From NCBI GenBank assembly GCA_047495785.1, contig JBLDXI010000048.1, positions 620,001 to 684,000 on the forward strand: a stretch of DNA of 64,000 nucleotides, written 5' to 3'. Each line of letters opens with the position of its first letter. The stretch's first letter is position 1. The translations under genes and the position numbers were made by a program. Positions 2,961 to 16,511 of the stretch are shown one piece after another. The notes under the pieces are model-generated. The model saw only the letters and a list, made by a program, of their open reading frames with translations, was not told the origin of the DNA and did no database searches. This stretch comes from Lepidodermella squamata (Eukaryota > Animalia > Gastrotricha).

Positions 2961-5900
2961 TCAGTCAACGGCCATTTTTTGCGGCTCGTCCGTCTGCGGC
3001 GTTTCGACGTCAGTCTCATCGATAGGGTAGTACCGACCAACGATGCGTTCAGCCGAAAATTGCCCCTTATTCCACTCAAGGCCGGTTTTATCCGTAAAAA
3101 CCTCTTCGAAATTGCGCTTAGCCGCGTCTTTCGAGTCGAAAACGTCGAGCTTGGTCGAGCCTATAGCGGTGGCAACGCGGCCCCACGACCGGTAGACCCA
3201 CCATACGGCGTTGTCGTTGGATTCGAACAGCTGGATTCGGTAGTAGAAATTCGATAGGCTCACCTCGGGAATTGAATGGAGTAAAACGCTCCAGACACAG
3301 CCGTCCTCTTCGAAGACGTGGGCTTCATCTTCCAAGCCTAAAAAATGTTCAAAAAGATTAATTATGTATGCATTTCTTGTGTTTGAAACCTAAATTCGAT
3401 TCAATTTTGAGAGATTTTCTTTTAATTAAAATGTTAATTTGTTTAAACTGATTTTTCAATTTATAATTACTTGATATTTGTTACCCACCAAGGTCATACC
3501 GATACTACAACATTATACGAATATTGCTGATTTTTATGTAGTTCTTGTTAAACTCTTTCTCATTTTCTCAAGTTGGCTTCTTCCTTTCTCAAATCAATCT
3601 CAGGGCCCATCGCAGTTGCGTATAGGGGCGAAAGACTAAACAAACTGCCTAATAGCCAGGTTATCGCAATCACGTCCTTTTCAATGGAGAATGGTGACCC
3701 GAATTCTCAAAATCAGGCTGATTAACATACATATCGATGATGAATTGAGTTGAACCAAACACTGAGCTAAGGTGCAAAATTACAACGCTCAATCGCTCAA
3801 ATCATCCCAATCACTGTAACTGCCAACAGCTAACTTCAAATTGAAAGGCTACGCAAAAGCTCTTCTTTGGACTTGTTTCTTGAAATTCACCGGCAATTTC
3901 TCAATTCTATCTTCCATCTCAGCTAGTCGCAAACGACTTGCAAACGGCAAGATACTATTTTCGTCCAGAATTTCCTCTGCTTTGTGTGGCCACAGCTGTC
4001 AACTTTTTTTAAGCCAACTGAATTTTTGAACAGAATTTAATTTTTTCTCGAAAGCGCTTGAAACTCTAGGGAATTTCCAGGAAACTTCAAGGTTCAGCAC
4101 GGAATATCTAATCAGTCCAAGTGAGCCAAAGTGTGTCATTATTGGAACCTTGGGTTCCAGCACTAAATTTCTCCAAATATGGTACCTAATCTTTTTTACC
4201 TATCTTAAATTTTTTCATGCCGATGTTGATTCCACGGGTCGGTTTTACAAATCAGTAATTTTTCCGATATTAAAGGTCATAGAGGCCTAAAATAAACATG
4301 TTTCTACCTAACTGGTACCGAGAAGCCAAGATAAACCCAGAGCCTCAGTATCAACAAAAGAAAATAAGCCAAAATAGCTATTCGGCGCTGGGAACTCGAC
4401 TTTATTGGTGAAAATTTTTATAGACTTATCTTTATTTTTGGAAAAAATCATAACAAGATTTTAATTGAGACTTGCCAGAAATAGGGAAATCAATCAAATT
4501 TCAAGTATGAATTATTTTCGAATTTTTAGAAGTACCTGATTCGGGATCAACCGTTCGCCGTGGTTCCACTTTCGGGCGTTTTTCCTCCACGCCTTCGCCT
4601 TTCTCGCCTTTTTTCGGCGACGACTCAATCGCCTCGGCCGTTGACTTGCCCAAGTGCCGGCCGCCGATTTCGTGGGACGCGGCTAAACAGCGGCGAATCC
4701 GGGCCGCCACGTCACTGCCGCAATTCGAAACCAGAGCGTGACGCTCGACCAACTCAGCCAACCATACCGAGCCGTTGTGTTTCGCCTCGTGGTACGAGGC
4801 GGGGTCAGCGACGAGGCGACCGGCTTGAGCGGCGGCAACACAGTCATCCACAAAATCCTAAAAAATAACAAAATTCATAAAATGAAAATGAAAATGAAAA
4901 ATGGTGATTTCATTTGAAATTTTTGAAAATGTTTGCAAGTTTTTTCCATTTTTTTAAATTGAAAAAATCGACAGAAATACAGCAAAATTTTGAAAAAAAG
5001 ATTACCTCGCCCACGACGTGAACATCGGCTTTAATAGCAGCTCGGACGTGGGTGCTGTGTGAGCCGATGCGAGCCTTGTAGTCGGAGACAACAGCCGCCA
5101 CGGTCGTGTCATCAGGTTCCGGTACAATAGTGGCGCCGAGGCGAACCAGGTCCTCGCGCACCTCGGCCAGCGAGCGGCGCTGCATGCGACCCGCAATGAA
5201 AAATCGAAGGTTATTCAACGGCCTTTCACCTAAAATAGTGAAATAGTAAAATTTAAAATGTTATCGTGAATTGGAAACATTTCCAAGTAATATTGTGGAT
5301 CCAAAAAAATTTCGAATTTTGAAAAATTTTAAAAAATTCAAAAAATTTTAAATTTTAATTTTCACCTATTATTCACTTTCAAATTCAATATCTGGTCTCA
5401 TTCCGTGAATTTATTAATTTACCTGATTCGAGCAAGGGCGGAGGTCGGAAGGCCGCTAAGTGGGGTGATTTTTGTTCCTTCACCTCGTCGCCCCCACTCC
5501 CCTGCTCCATCGGCTGCTCCTCCTGCTCGCGATTTTCCTTTTGCTGATGTTGTTGCTGCTGCTCATGTTCCATTTTTCTCGATTGGCGCCGAGCAATGAT
5601 CCGCCGAGCAGGGCCTTCAGACACCTCGCCTTCCTCGTACTCTTCCTCGCCTCCAGCCTCTTCCTCCCGTTCCCTCTCCCTCTCCGCCTCCTCCGGCTTC
5701 ATCGTCTTGATACCTTCACCCCGGAAATCAGCGGCGACATGCGGTTTGAAGGTCGTCGTAGTTTTTTGATGATGCTCCTCCTCATCGCCAAGACCAGAAT
5801 CTCGGCCAGGTCGGTTCTCTTGGTCACCACCCTTGGGGGTCTGCTTAGGTGGCATCTTACCACCCAGGGCTTCGACCAATCGCCGCTTGTCGTGGTCACG

Positions 5901-10700: not shown

Positions 10701-13700
10701 CGTTCTGTGTCTAGAGTTTCAATCAATGTTTCTGGGCGCGAGGGTGATTCGGTCGGGCAAAAAAGGCAAGCGGGCTATTACAAAAATGCCAAGTTCAAGT
10801 CCTAGAAATAACTTCTTCGTGTCTGTTGCAGTAAGCCCAACGCGGGGTCTCGTGCACTATGAGATCAAAGAACTCGTGGTGACTACACGAAACGTTATCT
10901 ACCGAGCATTTCGGTCAGTTTTCTTATTGTTTAATGTTCAAGGCTGTCTTCAAGAGAAAAGCGAGCCGAGTTCGGGCTGATCCTTCAAAAGCTCGAGCGA
11001 CCGCGGGGATCCTCTATCGCTGCTCTTTTAAATCTTTTCCTTCGATGAAACAACTGATTATTCCCTTTCATGCTTTTGGACTTCAGCTGGGAGCAGAATA
11101 TTAAATAAAAAACTATACAAACACTATCTTTCCAGTCTTCTTGAACGCGCCATTAAGGATCTTAAAGGTTTTGATTGTTTTAGCACGCAAGGAATCACCC
11201 ATGCTAATAATTATCCTCTTATGTTCGGAAAGCTGACTAAACTGACCACGTCAATTTGAATCAAACCAGCCCCATTAAAAAATTGTAATACAAACCTGTT
11301 GAATTTGCGACTTGCTCAACCGACCAAGTGGCATTTTCTTCAAATCAATCTCCATCTCAGCCATGATTTTCTTCATCATTTTGACGTCGAAGATCAACCG
11401 GATCAACTCCTGAACCTCCTTCGGCAGCTTCGACGACCCGCCGGCCTTGTCCAGCGACAAACTGCTCGCCTGGTCATCAGGGTCGACCCCGAAATCAACA
11501 TCGACCGGGTAGAAACGGCCTGGGATTTTCTGGCGAGAAAACGCGCCCTTATTCCACGGATTGCCGGTTTTTTCGAGGAACACCTCTTCGAAATTGTCTT
11601 TAGCCTTGTCCTTACTCGAGTACCTCTCAAGTTTGTTACTGCCAATAGTTGTGCCAATTCGACCCCAGGCTCGGAAAACCCACCAAGTTTTCCTGAAAAA
11701 TGAGGAATAACTTATCAAAAATTAAGAAAAAATTCGAAAAATTACTTGGTATCACTTTCAATCAATTGAAGCCTGTAGTAGGAATTCATTTTGTTTTCGA
11801 TCGACACCAAATTGAGGACGCAATTCCAAATGCAAGAGCCTTCTTCCAGCACGTGAGCTTCGTCGTCCAAACCTTGAATGAAAAATTACGAGATAATGTC
11901 ATGTCCAACTGAAATCTGTCCCGTTCGGCCACGGTAACGACCGATCGACTTTGTAGTCAAGTTGGCTTTTCGAGCCGTGAAAAATTGATGTACGGACGCA
12001 AAGTGAGGCGACGATCGGCTATTCTGACCGCCGCCTGTATCGAATAGTCCGAAAATATGACGGAAAATAATACGCGAGATTGCTCGAAAAAGGCAGCAAA
12101 ATTGGGTAAAAAAACTACTTTTTGTTTCAGTTTCGTATTTACAATAAAATTAGTCAATTAAATGCAATTAATTTTTTGGCTTTTTTCAATTTCTGAACAA
12201 TTTTTGAATTGCAAAACAAATTATTTTCATTTTTCGATTTAGAAACTTTTCGTAAAATTTTCGAAAAATTTAACAATATTTGTAATTCATTTTAAACCAA
12301 TTTTAAACAATTTTAAACAAATTTTAAACAAAATACCAAATTCATTCTCCCGTGTAAAGATCGAGCCGCACAATTCCGACATATTTTTTTTTAATATTTT
12401 TTCAAAAAATGAACTAACCTGAGTCTGGATCAACAGCCGACCGGCCTTTGACCTTGAACTTTTTCGTTTCTGGGCCGCTCTTATAATCCGATTTCAGGCC
12501 CGATTTCAACGCAGCAGTTGATTTTGCAACAATACCCATCGACTTCGCCAAATTCAACCGAATCCTCGAATTTACATTACCACCGCAATTCGGCACAATT
12601 TGATGTTTCACAATTAAATCAGCCAGATTTGTGAACCCATCTGGAACTGGGTCCGCAGGTTGACCCGGCTCTTGAACGATAACCTTCAATTTCGAAGTTT
12701 TCGCCACTTCAAGGACTTCGGTGATAAATTCCTCGCCGACAACGTGGATATCGGCAGTTTCGGCTGATTGGATGATTTTCGATTTCGCAGAGCCTTTTTT
12801 CGCCTCGGCTGAGCTCGTAACCAGGGCGATGACCGTGCCGTCAACATCAGCGGCTATTGTAGCGCCCAAATTGCTCAAAGCCTGGCGTAATTCGTTGACA
12901 GGCCGCGTCATTCGACCACTGACAACAAATTTCAGCAGAGATAACGGTTTGGAATCGTCAGTTTTCGAAGTAGCCTCCTCCTTTTTCACAGGATTAACGC
13001 GATCTGGCGGAAAAATTCGCTCTCTCGCCTTGTATTTATACTTTTTGAAAATATCGACCGATTCTTTGAGGTCGTCCGGAAATACCATCTTTTTCCGTTT
13101 CGGGGTCTTGGTTTGATAGGCGCATTTCGCCCATTCAGTCATTTGACCAGTGCAACGATAGGCATTGCACGTATCTGAGTGGACTAAATGACCCTTTTTA
13201 CATTCAGGGCACAGGGCTAAAGCGCCGAATAACAGACAATCAGCGAGTCGCTCGATCAGTTTGCCGGCCTCCGGCACGTGCTGGTCGTTGAATTCGAGCA
13301 ATTCTTTCATATCTCGCGTGCTCAAATCTGAATTTTGTAATTTATCGCGAACTTCCCAGATTTCTTTGTTCTGTAGTTTTAGTTGCTCGGCGAGATCGTC
13401 CTTCGATTTTTTATTCTCGACAGCGGTCGATGTTGTTGAGATCGAATCTTCGTTATCCGGCTCGTCCTTGGCCTTGCGTTTTTTCGACGTTTTCTTGCCG
13501 TCCTCTTTGTCTTGATTTGTTACACTCTTCGGCCGCGATGACTCGCCCTTTCCGAGTAGGGTGACCAATCGCTGTTGGTCTTCCTTCTCGAGCTGCGCAA
13601 ATCCGGCGCACGTTTCGACATTCAGTTCCGTCGTGAAGCCGAGATCGACGCGTTTATCAACAAAACATTGAACGTGGTGCCACAGCGTCTGAAAAATCAG

Positions 13701-14574
13701 TCAAATTACGATTCAATAGAAAAGCCCAACAAGTAAATATTGATTGATTCTGAAGTATTCATATCGAAAAATTTTCGATCAAGTTTTTCGAAAAATTTGA
13801 CATTTTTTAGCATTTCCGAAATCAGAATGAGATTTGTGCGATTCAAATTTTTTGGAAAATTTTTATTATAAATATATTCTATGATAAAATCAACTAACTC
13901 GTATTATTATCATAATAAAAATACTATTTGATTTCAACTAAATTGACAACTGCAAGAATCGGTGTAATATGAGAGCATAGTTCGCCTTTATACCCTGTTG
14001 AGTTATTTCATAACTAAATTTTACAGATCCGCCATCGAAATTCGGCTATATTCAGTATTCTCACCTGAGGTCCGTACATCTTCGCCTGGTCAGACTCGTA
14101 GTCCATTTTCCCTAACCGAGCTTCATTTTTCGGAATTTTCTCCTCGCAAGCGCGGCATTTGGACCCGCCTGATTTCGCGTATTCCACCTTAAAATCTCGT
14201 GTCCCGGAATCATCAACTGCTGCTGCTGCCGCGGCGCCTTTTTTGCCCTTGCCTTTGCCTTTTCCGGACGAGGCAGCCGCATCTCCACCCGCGGCCCCAC
14301 CTCCTCCGATTTGCTTCTCAATTTTCTGCTGATCTTCCCACCGCAATGAGTGAAACCCGTGGATATCTTCTGTCTTCTGAACTCGAGCCTTCTTCCAAAA
14401 ACACGCGTAGTGGTACCAATTGGGCATTTTCCCGTCGAAATGCGGGCTCTGGATCATGACCGCGAGGCGTAGCGAGTCTTGAGAAATAGTTTCCTTGCAC
14501 CCGCGACACCCTGCCCGGCCACTTTTCGCGTATTCGGCCCGAAATGGCAAGTCTTTCGCGCCATCATCTGCCAT
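7775..14574 (-). CDS. PARP1: Poly(ADP-ribose) polymerase 1, full length (ZnF1-ZnF2-ZnF3/PADR1-BRCT-WGR-regulatory-catalytic)
   Basis: Exons 14574-14065, 13688-12419, 11872-11746, 11692-11296, 9355-8836, 8431-8229 and 7999-7775 are phase-compatible. Motifs [63 protein letters not shown] and LLYNEFIVY; the H-Y-E triad is intact. Confidence 0.97.
9509..10390 (+). mobile_element. Ty1/copia-type gag ORF with primer-binding site, antisense within PARP1 intron 4; no pol or paired LTRs seen
   Basis: GGTTATGGGCCC at 9511-9522 is the copia-type PBS (half initiator tRNA-Met). The N-terminus [15 protein letters not shown]...P is copia gag-like. The zinc knuckle [14 protein letters not shown] fits CX2CX4HX4C. 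Confidence 0.8.
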
Positions 14575-14776
14575 TTTCGTTTCTCTTCAATTCGTCTAAT
14601 TAAAATTATGAGCAAAAATTATGAATAAAACAAAATAAACGCAAATTAAAATGAAGTGATCAGTTTTATTAAAAAGAATCCACCATAATGAAATATCACA
14701 GGAAATTGAGTCAGAATTTTAGCACCATATTTGACAGGTCTGGAGGCGAATTACCTGAAATGGGAGAAATTGACAT

Positions 14777-14925
14777 TAATATCCGCGTCATATAACCTTT
14801 CGATTGAATGAAAATCTATCGAAAAAACGCCTTGAAGCGATGTCTATATCGCACCTGACGGGAGAGATGACGCTACGCTTTTCCGAGAAAAAGCAAACGG
14901 CAACTAATAATAGATAGGGTGCTCT
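14777..14925 (-). ncRNA. H/ACA snoRNA copy A (most diverged; H69 guide plus second LSU guide)
   Basis: Intronic. Hairpin GCACC...GGUGC with pocket CUCCCGUC. Second hairpin pocket AGGCGUU/GUUAUA. Terminal box is AUA rather than ACA and the H box is imperfect. Confidence 0.75.
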
Positions 14926-15033
14926 AAAACTACTACTAGTGGTAAATGAAAACCAAATTTACCTTTGATTGTGAAGAACTGCGGATAAAATTATCGCGAA
15001 AAATGCCGCTATCGAAAACTGAAATAAAAAATT

Positions 15034-15168
15034 GGTTGTTCAAAATCGAGAAGATCCAAAAATTATGGGGAATAATTTTGAGAAAAAATCTCGAAATCAG
15101 TTTGAATCTCGCACCTGGCGGGAGAATTGAATGTGGGGATTACACAAGCAACTACTAATAGGGTGCCC
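15034..15168 (-). ncRNA. H/ACA snoRNA copy B (LSU helix 69 guide)
   Basis: Intronic. GGGCACC-CUAUUAGU-AGUUG...CAAUU-CUCCCGCC-AGGUGC, variant hinge AGAUUC, second hairpin, then ACA at 15039-15037. Confidence 0.8.
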
Positions 15169-15269
15169 TGACTTGGAATAAAATAGTAATAATAACTTAC
15201 AAATCGCTTAATTTAGCCAGATCGCCGGATTTTTCTCGGAGCCAAAGCGCACCTGGAAAATAAGAAAAT

Positions 15270-15412
15270 TAATGTCCGAGTCATATAACCTTCCGATTGA
15301 ATTGAATTCTATCGAAAAAACGCCTTGACACAATTTTGGTATCGCACCTGGCGGGAGAATTGACGCTACGCCTACAAGAGACTAAGCGGCAACTACTAAT
15401 AGCAGGGTGCTC
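15270..15412 (-). ncRNA. H/ACA snoRNA copy C (dual guide: LSU H69 and UAUGAC-U-GAACGCCU site)
   Basis: Intronic. H box AUACCA lies 15 nt after the start of the CUCCCGCC pocket. Second pocket AGGCGUU/GUUAUA lies 14 nt before ACA (15275-15273). Confidence 0.9.
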
Positions 15413-15499
15413 TTCATGCCAATAAAAATATTTAATATTCTCACCTCAAAGTCATTCGAAGTCATTAGCTCCATTCGATCGAGAAGAATCTGAGATGAA

Positions 15500-15637
15500 A
15501 AATGTTCAAAATCAAGACAAATTTCGAATTGAGAAGCATTAATTCGAGTAACTAGTCCCGAAATCGAATGTTAGTCTCGCACCTGGCGGGAGAATTGAAT
15601 GTGGAATTAAGCACAAACAACTACTAATAGGGTGCCC
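15500..15637 (-). ncRNA. H/ACA snoRNA copy D (LSU helix 69 guide)
   Basis: Intronic. Same first hairpin, canonical H box AGACUA, and ACA at 15505-15503. Confidence 0.85.
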
Positions 15638-15762
15638 GAAAATTTCAATCAAATTTAGTCACTCACCTTGTTAATCGATCGAAAGTATATCAATCGACCT
15701 TCGCGGCTACTTTGTCCAAAGTTGTTGCTGATTCTCTGGAATAGAAAACATAAATTGTATGA

Positions 15763-15902
15763 AATTGTCTGAAACATTGATCGCGTTTCAAGCGAAAAAT
15801 GCAATCAACAGAAAATTCGATAGATCTCGCACCTGGCGGGAGAATCAACGCCTGATCCAAAGAAGAACTCTTCAGACGGCGTCAACTACTAATAGGGTGC
15901 CC
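15763..15902 (-). ncRNA. H/ACA snoRNA copy E (LSU helix 69 guide)
   Basis: Intronic. Same pocket with a different upper stem, hinge AGAUCU(A), second hairpin UUGAUUGC/GCGAUCAA, and ACA at 15768-15766. Confidence 0.8.
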
Positions 15903-16511
15903 TTTCGAAAACAAATAATAGTTGAACACTCACCTTGATCAATCGAACGGAGCAGCATCGCAATTGTTCGAAATATTCTGAAAAACAGGAAAATTTACGC
16001 AGTTGTTGCAACAATTTTTAACCAGCCGGAGCTCAATAAAAACTGTAAATAGTCTGCTAATAATTTAATCGCATTAAAAAATTGAAATTCGAAGTGGAAA
16101 ATTCAATTAAAATTAAATAAAAATGCGATTTTTCAAAAAATAATTGATAATTACAGTTCACTCACCATATTATTTCAGTATATCGGCATTCTCGTGAAAA
16201 TTCAAATAAAATCTAAACGAAATAAAACAAAATTAGCGAGTTAATTTATTCGGCAGTAAGAAAAATGCGCTGCTAAAAGGAGTTGAGAGCGATAATAATA
16301 AACAATAAAAATGCGTTGCTTCAGAGTAGCGATGGAAAAACTGGAAATATGTGACATTAGATGCCACACCGAATAATTGGTTGTACCAAACAGATAATAG
16401 CCGAGAAACAGTTTCATAAACCGGAATGCCAGTAATAATAATTGTTCGCGTGCAAGCGGGTTTGTTTTATAATAGCACAACCTCAGAACTGCCACCTTAT
16501 AAAATAACAAA

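Follow-up and report, generated by a model that had tools for sequence, protein, structure and literature searches.

The calpain-PARP1 interval and its spliced transcript

The stretch of DNA analysed here, referred to as the window, comprises 64,000 nucleotides (nt) of Lepidodermella squamata (contig JBLDXI010000048.1 of assembly GCA_047495785.1, positions 620,001 to 684,000), and coordinates are window positions unless another locus is named. [quoted passage not shown] The array is located directly upstream of PARP1, as the initial annotation had it. The locus is very probably a UHG-type non-coding host with five introns, each carrying one H/ACA guide for the same uridine of helix 69 (H69) in the large subunit (LSU) ribosomal RNA (rRNA), an arrangement that arose by tandem duplication and whose position beside PARP1 most likely reflects synteny.

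The array consists of five paralogous elements of 135-148 nt each, all on the minus strand between 14777 and 15902, which are designated c1 to c5. A repeat scan recovers their core in five copies with a spacing of 233-260 nt. The 14-mer CTCCCGCCAGGTGC (minus strand, 14851-15842) is found in four exact occurrences and one with a single mismatch; when up to two mismatches are allowed, the 64-kb window contains six matches including one unrelated site, compared with 0.25 expected from shuffles. Read on the minus strand, a copy runs from GCACC through CUAUUAGU, the upper stem, CUCCCGCCA and GGUGC to a hinge, a second hairpin and ACA, with the 5' pocket strand CUAUUAGU terminating in UAGU.

Splicing of the host was read from the assembled contigs of two RNA-type public runs, X2 and X3, which are labelled as different organisms. 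Introns 2 (15490-15666, minus strand, holding c2) and 4 (15019-15200, minus strand, holding c4) are skipped exactly in the contigs of both runs. The same contigs skip introns 3 (15253-15444, minus strand, holding c3) and 5 (14755-14962, minus strand, holding c5), for which the junctions were reported as 15249/15442 and 14750/14959 and are cut three and four places further right, respectively, with the GT/AG signals checked. Intron 1 (15736-15933, minus strand, holding c1) has its GT..AG borders from the sequence; here the X2 contig reaches 15737 and continues into a segment that resembles the exon at 15934-15977 with few substitutions. All five junctions appear to be used, four of them being skipped exactly and intron 1 being supported by indirect evidence. 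The introns measure 177-208 nt, and the copy within begins 29-38 nt after the 5' end of the intron and finishes 10-27 nt before its 3' end. Repeat scan, 14-mer count and splice signals agree with the initial claim that the motif recurs five times, with one copy per consecutive GT-AG intron.

The host is transcribed and spliced. Its exons in the RNA contigs, as recorded for X3, are 15667-15735, 15445-15489, 15201-15252, 14963-15018 and 14718-14754 (minus strand, span 14718-15735). At 45-69 nt they are short, and the longest ATG-initiated open reading frame in the spliced model encodes 24 amino acids. Paralogous host exons are only about 40-45% identical compared with 74-80% for the snoRNA paralogues, and no peptide similarity was detected between the host exons of the window and those of a related species. 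A coding host was considered on the basis of an apparent open reading frame of 69 amino acids and rejected, as this frame is gone once the correct junctions are applied and no peptide is kept in the relative. Conserved introns combined with unconstrained exons imply a non-coding snoRNA host of the UHG type, so that the non-coding, spliced minus-strand transcript of the initial annotation is retained.

Beyond these exons the host probably extends in the 5' direction. Its putative 5' part (15934-16218, minus strand) would begin at an acceptor-like GTTTAG/ATTTTAT (16218-16206) and comprise a candidate exon (16166-16212), a candidate intron (15978-16165) and the exon 15934-15977, all of which are drawn from splice signals rather than from reads. 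The candidate intron 15978-16165 (minus strand) folds as two hairpins separated by an AAAUUA hinge (z = -2.28), with AU-only pockets and without an ACA after the second hairpin; from this fold, it may represent one more small RNA of the host, a sixth one of different or degenerate type. At the 3' side, an AATAAA (14665-14670, minus strand) is situated downstream of the last host exon junction, and no contig enters PARP1. The host contigs of X2 and X3 both stop at 14718, within a run of four A residues; this base is 36 nt from the start of the last exon and precedes the AATAAA by 48 nt, and no poly(A) or junction was reported there.

Conservation, folding and rRNA complementarity of the array

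Among named proteins, the best matches to the calpain exon of the window stem from Lingula, a nemertean, an annelid and molluscs (about 45% identity), which marks the organism as a spiralian. A related species is represented by a locus from an ENA metagenome (L001), the calpain of which is 71% identical to that of the window. Its gene order, consisting of ankyrin-repeat genes, calpain, a gap of 1.3 kb and PARP1, equals the window order, and the gap contains three intronic guide copies, r1 to r3. Both the order calpain, host, PARP1 and the placement of one copy per intron are therefore kept in one relative, which answers the question of synteny raised at the outset. Exact matches of at least 11 nt between the two intergenic regions are confined to GGGCACCCTATTAGTAGT, (ATT)CTCCCGCCAGGTGC, the acceptor-like 13-mer GTTTAGATTTTAT at the host start and two low-complexity 11-mers. 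As pocket and lower-stem segments are nearly the sole intergenic matches, the guide strands and the lower stem are the elements under selection. The relative's intron between r2 and r3 (L001 12442-12606) contains a box C/D-like RNA (UGAUGA ... CUGA) which has no counterpart in the window and no Rfam match at E<=1.

Seven of the eight family members (four from the window and three from the relative) adopt the hairpin-hinge-hairpin-ACA structure when folded over their whole length, the exception being c5. Copy c1 (15763-15902, minus strand, 140 nt) shows the pocket strands CUAUUAGU and CUCCCGCCA, the hinge AGAUCU, a 3' hairpin and ACA; it scores 69.4 bits with R1, a covariance model (CM) built from the eight 5' hairpins, folds canonically with z = -2.17 and pairs with H69 through 8+4 base pairs (bp) at 15 nt from the hinge box. 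Copy c2 (15500-15637, minus strand, 138 nt; H box AGACUA, ACA) reaches 78.9 bits and z = -2.55, and c3 (15270-15412, minus strand, 143 nt; H box AUACCA, ACA) 65 bits and z = -2.10, both with the H69 target, while c4 (15034-15168, minus strand, 135 nt) reaches 74.7 bits and z = -2.07. The ACA follows the 3' hairpin in seven of the eight copies and is replaced by AUA in c5, the 3' ends being those predicted from the sequence.

The structure of the 5' hairpins is supported by covariation. In the CM-guided alignment, 92% of cells are paired compared with 79.6% in shuffles (none of 500 reaches the observed value), and slid controls pair at 23-39% of cells. Seven of the nine upper-stem pairs have changed on both sides, for example from U-A to C-G, and five lower-stem pairs are invariant among copies. 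The initial observation that the upper stems differ between copies and still pair around a nearly invariant pocket is thus borne out, and the canonical structure originally attributed to every copy applies to c1-c4 and not to c5. With filters off, CM R1 retrieves from the window and L001 together (85.6 kb) only the eight copies, at 53-79 bits, the next matches scoring at most 10.5 bits. At this scale, a transposon or dispersed repeat is rejected.

The proposed target was examined on rRNA sequences from metagenomes. Metagenome contigs match the 33-mer GGCGGGAGTAACTATGACTCTCTTAAGGTAGCC exactly in more than 120 cases, and the H69 sequence lies within the Rfam-verified eukaryotic LSU rRNA of three full metagenome ribosomal DNA (rDNA) units. 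All small subunit, 5.8S and LSU sequences of these three units were scanned in every pocket register, requiring an upper-stem stack of at least 4 bp and a distance of 13-17 nt from the box. A single site is common to the three rDNAs and to seven of the eight copies, namely GGCGGGAG-UA-ACUA(U) in LSU H69, with 8+4 or 8+5 bp and a distance of 15. Two copies of the relative have AUGGU in place of UAGU and retain the pairing through G-U. The target U stands in the context GGCGGGAG-U-AACUAUGAC, 15 nt from the H box. In a published alignment human G3734 corresponds to E. coli A1918, and both E. coli 1911 and the matching position of the human H69 loop are pseudouridines (PMC2875026); in human 28S rRNA, position 3737 is guided by SNORA23 and positions 3741/3743 by U19/SNORA74A (PMC6466398). 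By sequence alignment, the predicted target corresponds to E. coli 1911 and human 28S-3737, the first of the U residues in the helix 69 loop. Target scan and published alignment agree with the initial annotation on the identity of this uridine and on its distance from the H box. That all five copies are aimed at H69 holds for c1-c4, for which it is the unique site shared by the three rDNAs, and fails for c5, which lacks a qualifying pocket.

Several results weigh against the identification as H69 guides. The RNA contigs of X2 and X3 cover the host exons and not the snoRNA introns. Rfam yields zero matches in the window at gathering thresholds, and no relevant H/ACA family, SNORA23 included, at E<=10 on the 2.2-kb region and on c2 alone or at E<=1 on the relative's locus, so the comparison by Infernal suggested in the initial annotation connects the array with no curated H/ACA family. 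The fold z-scores of the eight members are modest, from -0.6 to -2.6. A perfect ANANNA H box is present in four of the eight (c2, c3, r1 and r3); the other four deviate at position 6, and of the ANANNA adenines they retain those at positions 1 and 3 only. The target was verified on three other eukaryotic rDNAs and the more than 120 metagenome matches; for the species' own 28S rRNA, GGCGGGAGUAACUA is predicted. For the 3' hairpins, an all-register scan of the three rDNAs returned no target above the shuffled background. Finally, a 12-bp bipartite match with G-U allowed is not rare for a pocket, with 0.5-5 null matches per rDNA set. The case for the target therefore rests on the all-Watson-Crick pairing, the spacing and the conservation across copies and species.

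These results could be taken to mean that the repeats are not snoRNAs at all, and that they represent a local tandem repeat, a transposon remnant or intronic splicing or structural elements with a fortuitous rRNA complementarity. The missing Rfam match, the modest z-scores, the imperfect H boxes and the RNA contigs without intronic reads would all fit such an explanation. It does not account for the compensatory changes which preserve the upper stem, nor for guide strands and a lower stem that are kept between species in saturated surroundings. It would also have to attribute to chance a bipartite match of 8+4/5 bp to a known pseudouridylation site, at the 15-nt spacing, in seven of eight copies, which survives the change from UAGU to UGGU. 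As there are zero further copies in 85.6 kb and the one-per-intron placement is kept in the relative, this alternative is very improbable.

Two individual 3' hairpins show matches at a distance of 17 from the box in LSU domain V/VI of all three rDNAs, neither of which is above shuffles. The 3' hairpin of c2 (15500-15570) pairs with UGAGACAGGU-UA-GUU through 10+3 bp, rich in G-U and measured from the ACA, and that of r3 (L001 12775-12837) with CUGGGUU-UA-GAC through 7+3 bp.

Taken as H/ACA guides, the copies would act in the established manner of this class. After splicing and debranching, each intron would be trimmed to the RNA protected by dyskerin, Nop10, Nhp2 and Gar1. The pocket of the 5' hairpin would then pair with 28S rRNA, its 3' strand CUCCCGCC with GGCGGGAG and its 5' strand UAGU (AUGGU in two copies of the relative) with ACUA(U). 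The U of ...GAG-U-A-ACUA... would thereby stay unpaired where the upper stem begins, 15 nt away from the H box, and would be isomerised to pseudouridine.

The copies are not equally intact. Copy c5 (14777-14924, minus strand, 148 nt) is degenerate, with the lowest CM score (53.1 bits) and z = -1.17. In this copy AUA replaces ACA, UAUU replaces UAGU and CCCGUC replaces CCCGCC, and the basal position of the upper stem is a U-U mismatch; its whole-length minimum free energy fold is non-canonical, and it offers neither a qualifying pocket nor a target. Copy c5 is probably in decay. Copy c4 is affected in another haplotype, as seen in a DNA-type run (X1) that contains the unspliced locus from another haplotype or strain with 16 substitutions relative to the window. 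Here, 18 nt at about 15113-15131 are deleted, and with them the 3' pocket strand and part of the lower stem of c4, which makes the count of intact copies polymorphic. The closest paralogues are c2 and c4 (74% identical) and c3 and c5 (80% identical), a pairing which shows the tandem duplication of a two-unit block of about 470-490 bp. The array very probably grew by tandem duplication of intron-exon units, including the copying of one two-unit block into c2/c4 and c3/c5, and is now turning over. With a block duplication, a decaying copy and a haplotype-specific deletion, it provides a small and clean case of birth-and-death evolution in intronic snoRNAs.

The position next to PARP1

The interval between the last snoRNA intron and the ATG of PARP1 is 180 nt in the window and 90 nt in the relative. 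From calpain to PARP1, the minus strand contains only two AATAAA hexamers (16250-16245 and 14670-14665), each of which precedes an unpaired acceptor-like AG by about 30-70 nt, one at the host start and the other at the PARP1 start. The latter, TTAATTAG followed by ACGAATTG (14572-14603, minus strand, with the AG at 14597-14596), lies 21 nt upstream of the PARP1 ATG, and in the relative a similar AG followed by ACGTAATTA lies 9 nt upstream of its PARP1 ATG. Counterparts of the acceptor-like sites at 16206-16218 and 14588-14603 are located in the relative at L001 11920-11932 and about 12925-12941. From its sequence signals, the layout of calpain, host and PARP1 looks operon-like. Further along, the relative's contig (L001 12942-16624) continues with a single PARP1 and then a gene with a Tho1/MOS11 domain.

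The initial annotation had suggested that the array and PARP1 form a co-transcribed module. In its general form, this would make host and PARP1 one transcription unit, either as cistrons of an operon or as an outron with spliced-leader trans-splicing at the AG 21 nt before the ATG, or with the host exons serving as PARP1 5' untranslated region (UTR), and guide output would be coupled to PARP1 output. Strand and order of calpain, host and PARP1 are identical in two species, the gap between host and PARP1 is short in both, and an unpaired acceptor of the form AG/ACG(A/T)AAT stands just before the PARP1 ATG in both. The hexamers upstream of the two unpaired acceptors and the conserved acceptor-like 13-mer at the host start are equally in keeping with this idea, as is the precedent of mfl/dUhg6, in which a supposed non-coding host turned out to consist of UTR exons of its coding neighbour (PMC1821038). 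Against this stands the RNA evidence. No contig of X2 or X3 bridges host and PARP1, both host contigs ending at 14718, although the depth of X2 is 0 over 14523-14669 and such a hole proves nothing. A spliced leader was not seen at the host-PARP1 locus, and a protein search for transcript-derived PARP1 N-termini of the organism gave distant homologues only. The many upstream ATGs in the host exons argue against their retention as PARP1 5' UTR. Furthermore, ankyrin genes, calpain and PARP1 are all collinear in the two species, which means that adjacency is not specific to snoRNAs and PARP1. A single transcription unit is therefore unlikely. If it did exist, the output of an H69 guide would be tied to PARP1 in this lineage, echoing the mammalian axis of snoRNAs, PARP-1 and ribosome biogenesis, and it is only in this case that the adjacency matters.

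A different proposal is that the array is a PARP1-regulating module, in which the snoRNAs bind and activate the product of the neighbouring gene as they do in mammals. The mammalian report on which the initial annotation drew is real: in PMC7200641, which cites Kim et al. 2019, SNORA73A, SNORA73B and SNORA74A are described as binding and activating PARP-1. SNORA74A is moreover a helix 69 guide itself, for 28S-3741/3743 (PMC6466398), and the adjacency is kept in one relative. None of these three snoRNAs guides the position targeted here, and the guides of the array match SNORA23 in function and not the PARP-1-binding snoRNAs. Sequence says nothing on protein binding, and an RNA-protein contact in trans requires no linkage of the genes. 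Within 10 kb upstream of PARP1, neither an H69-type pocket nor a family member was found in Candidula (a snail), Brachionus (a monogonont rotifer) and one further eukaryote. A lone CTCCCGCC match from this test of distant PARP1 linkage was discarded as not pocket-like. A regulatory module of this kind is very improbable. With no bridging contig and no guide upstream of PARP1 in three distant eukaryotes, the co-transcribed module of the initial annotation is not upheld, and the adjacency most likely amounts to synteny and no more, in a genome that is compact and operon-like.

Relation to known snoRNA systems

A spiralian without snoRNA annotation and without an Rfam match thereby gains a snoRNA family together with its host. 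The array predicts RNA-guided pseudouridylation of the H69 uridine equivalent to E. coli 1911 outside vertebrates. It also bears on the takeover by guide RNAs of three ancient helix 69 pseudouridines, which in bacteria are made by the protein enzyme RluD.

The closest functional counterpart is human SNORA23 (ACA23), which is likewise an intronic box H/ACA snoRNA and has the same predicted target, 28S-3737, located 4 nt 5' of 3741/3743 (PMC6466398, PMC2875026). The likeness rests on function alone, as Rfam models reveal no similarity of sequence or structure at E<=10. In contrast to the array with its 3-5 tandem copies, non-coding host and 3' hairpins without a robust target, SNORA23 exists as a single copy within the protein-coding gene IPO7, and 28S-4331 is its second target. 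From sequence comparison, orthology of the array to SNORA23 can be neither demonstrated nor excluded.

The organisation of the locus has its parallel in Drosophila, where the snoRNA isoforms DmSnR60 a-d and snm60 a-b of mfl/dUhg6 are placed, as in the array, one per intron among non-coding exons and arose by duplication of intron-exon units (PMC1821038). The Drosophila family is of the box C/D class and resides in the 3' UTR of a coding gene, whereas the array is of the box H/ACA class, precedes a coding gene and comes from a spiralian. With four DmSnR60 and two snm60 isoforms, tandem one-per-intron amplification is well described (PMC1821038), and the array itself contains a decaying copy and a further one affected by deletion in a second haplotype. 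To call five-fold amplification of a single guide unusual, as the initial annotation had done, is not supported.

Helix 69 is also served by yeast snR191 and human U19 (SNORA74A), H/ACA guides which direct the two most conserved pseudouridines of this helix; SNORA74A is among the snoRNAs reported to bind PARP-1 (PMC7200641; bioRxiv 10.1101/2024.02.02.578723). The targets of snR191 and U19 are the equivalents of E. coli 1915 and 1917 and that of the array the equivalent of 1911; in the target scan, the array pocket pairs with neither of the former sites. The annotation of the array as a new snoRNA family of an already known sort is well supported, and it is not a new mechanism.

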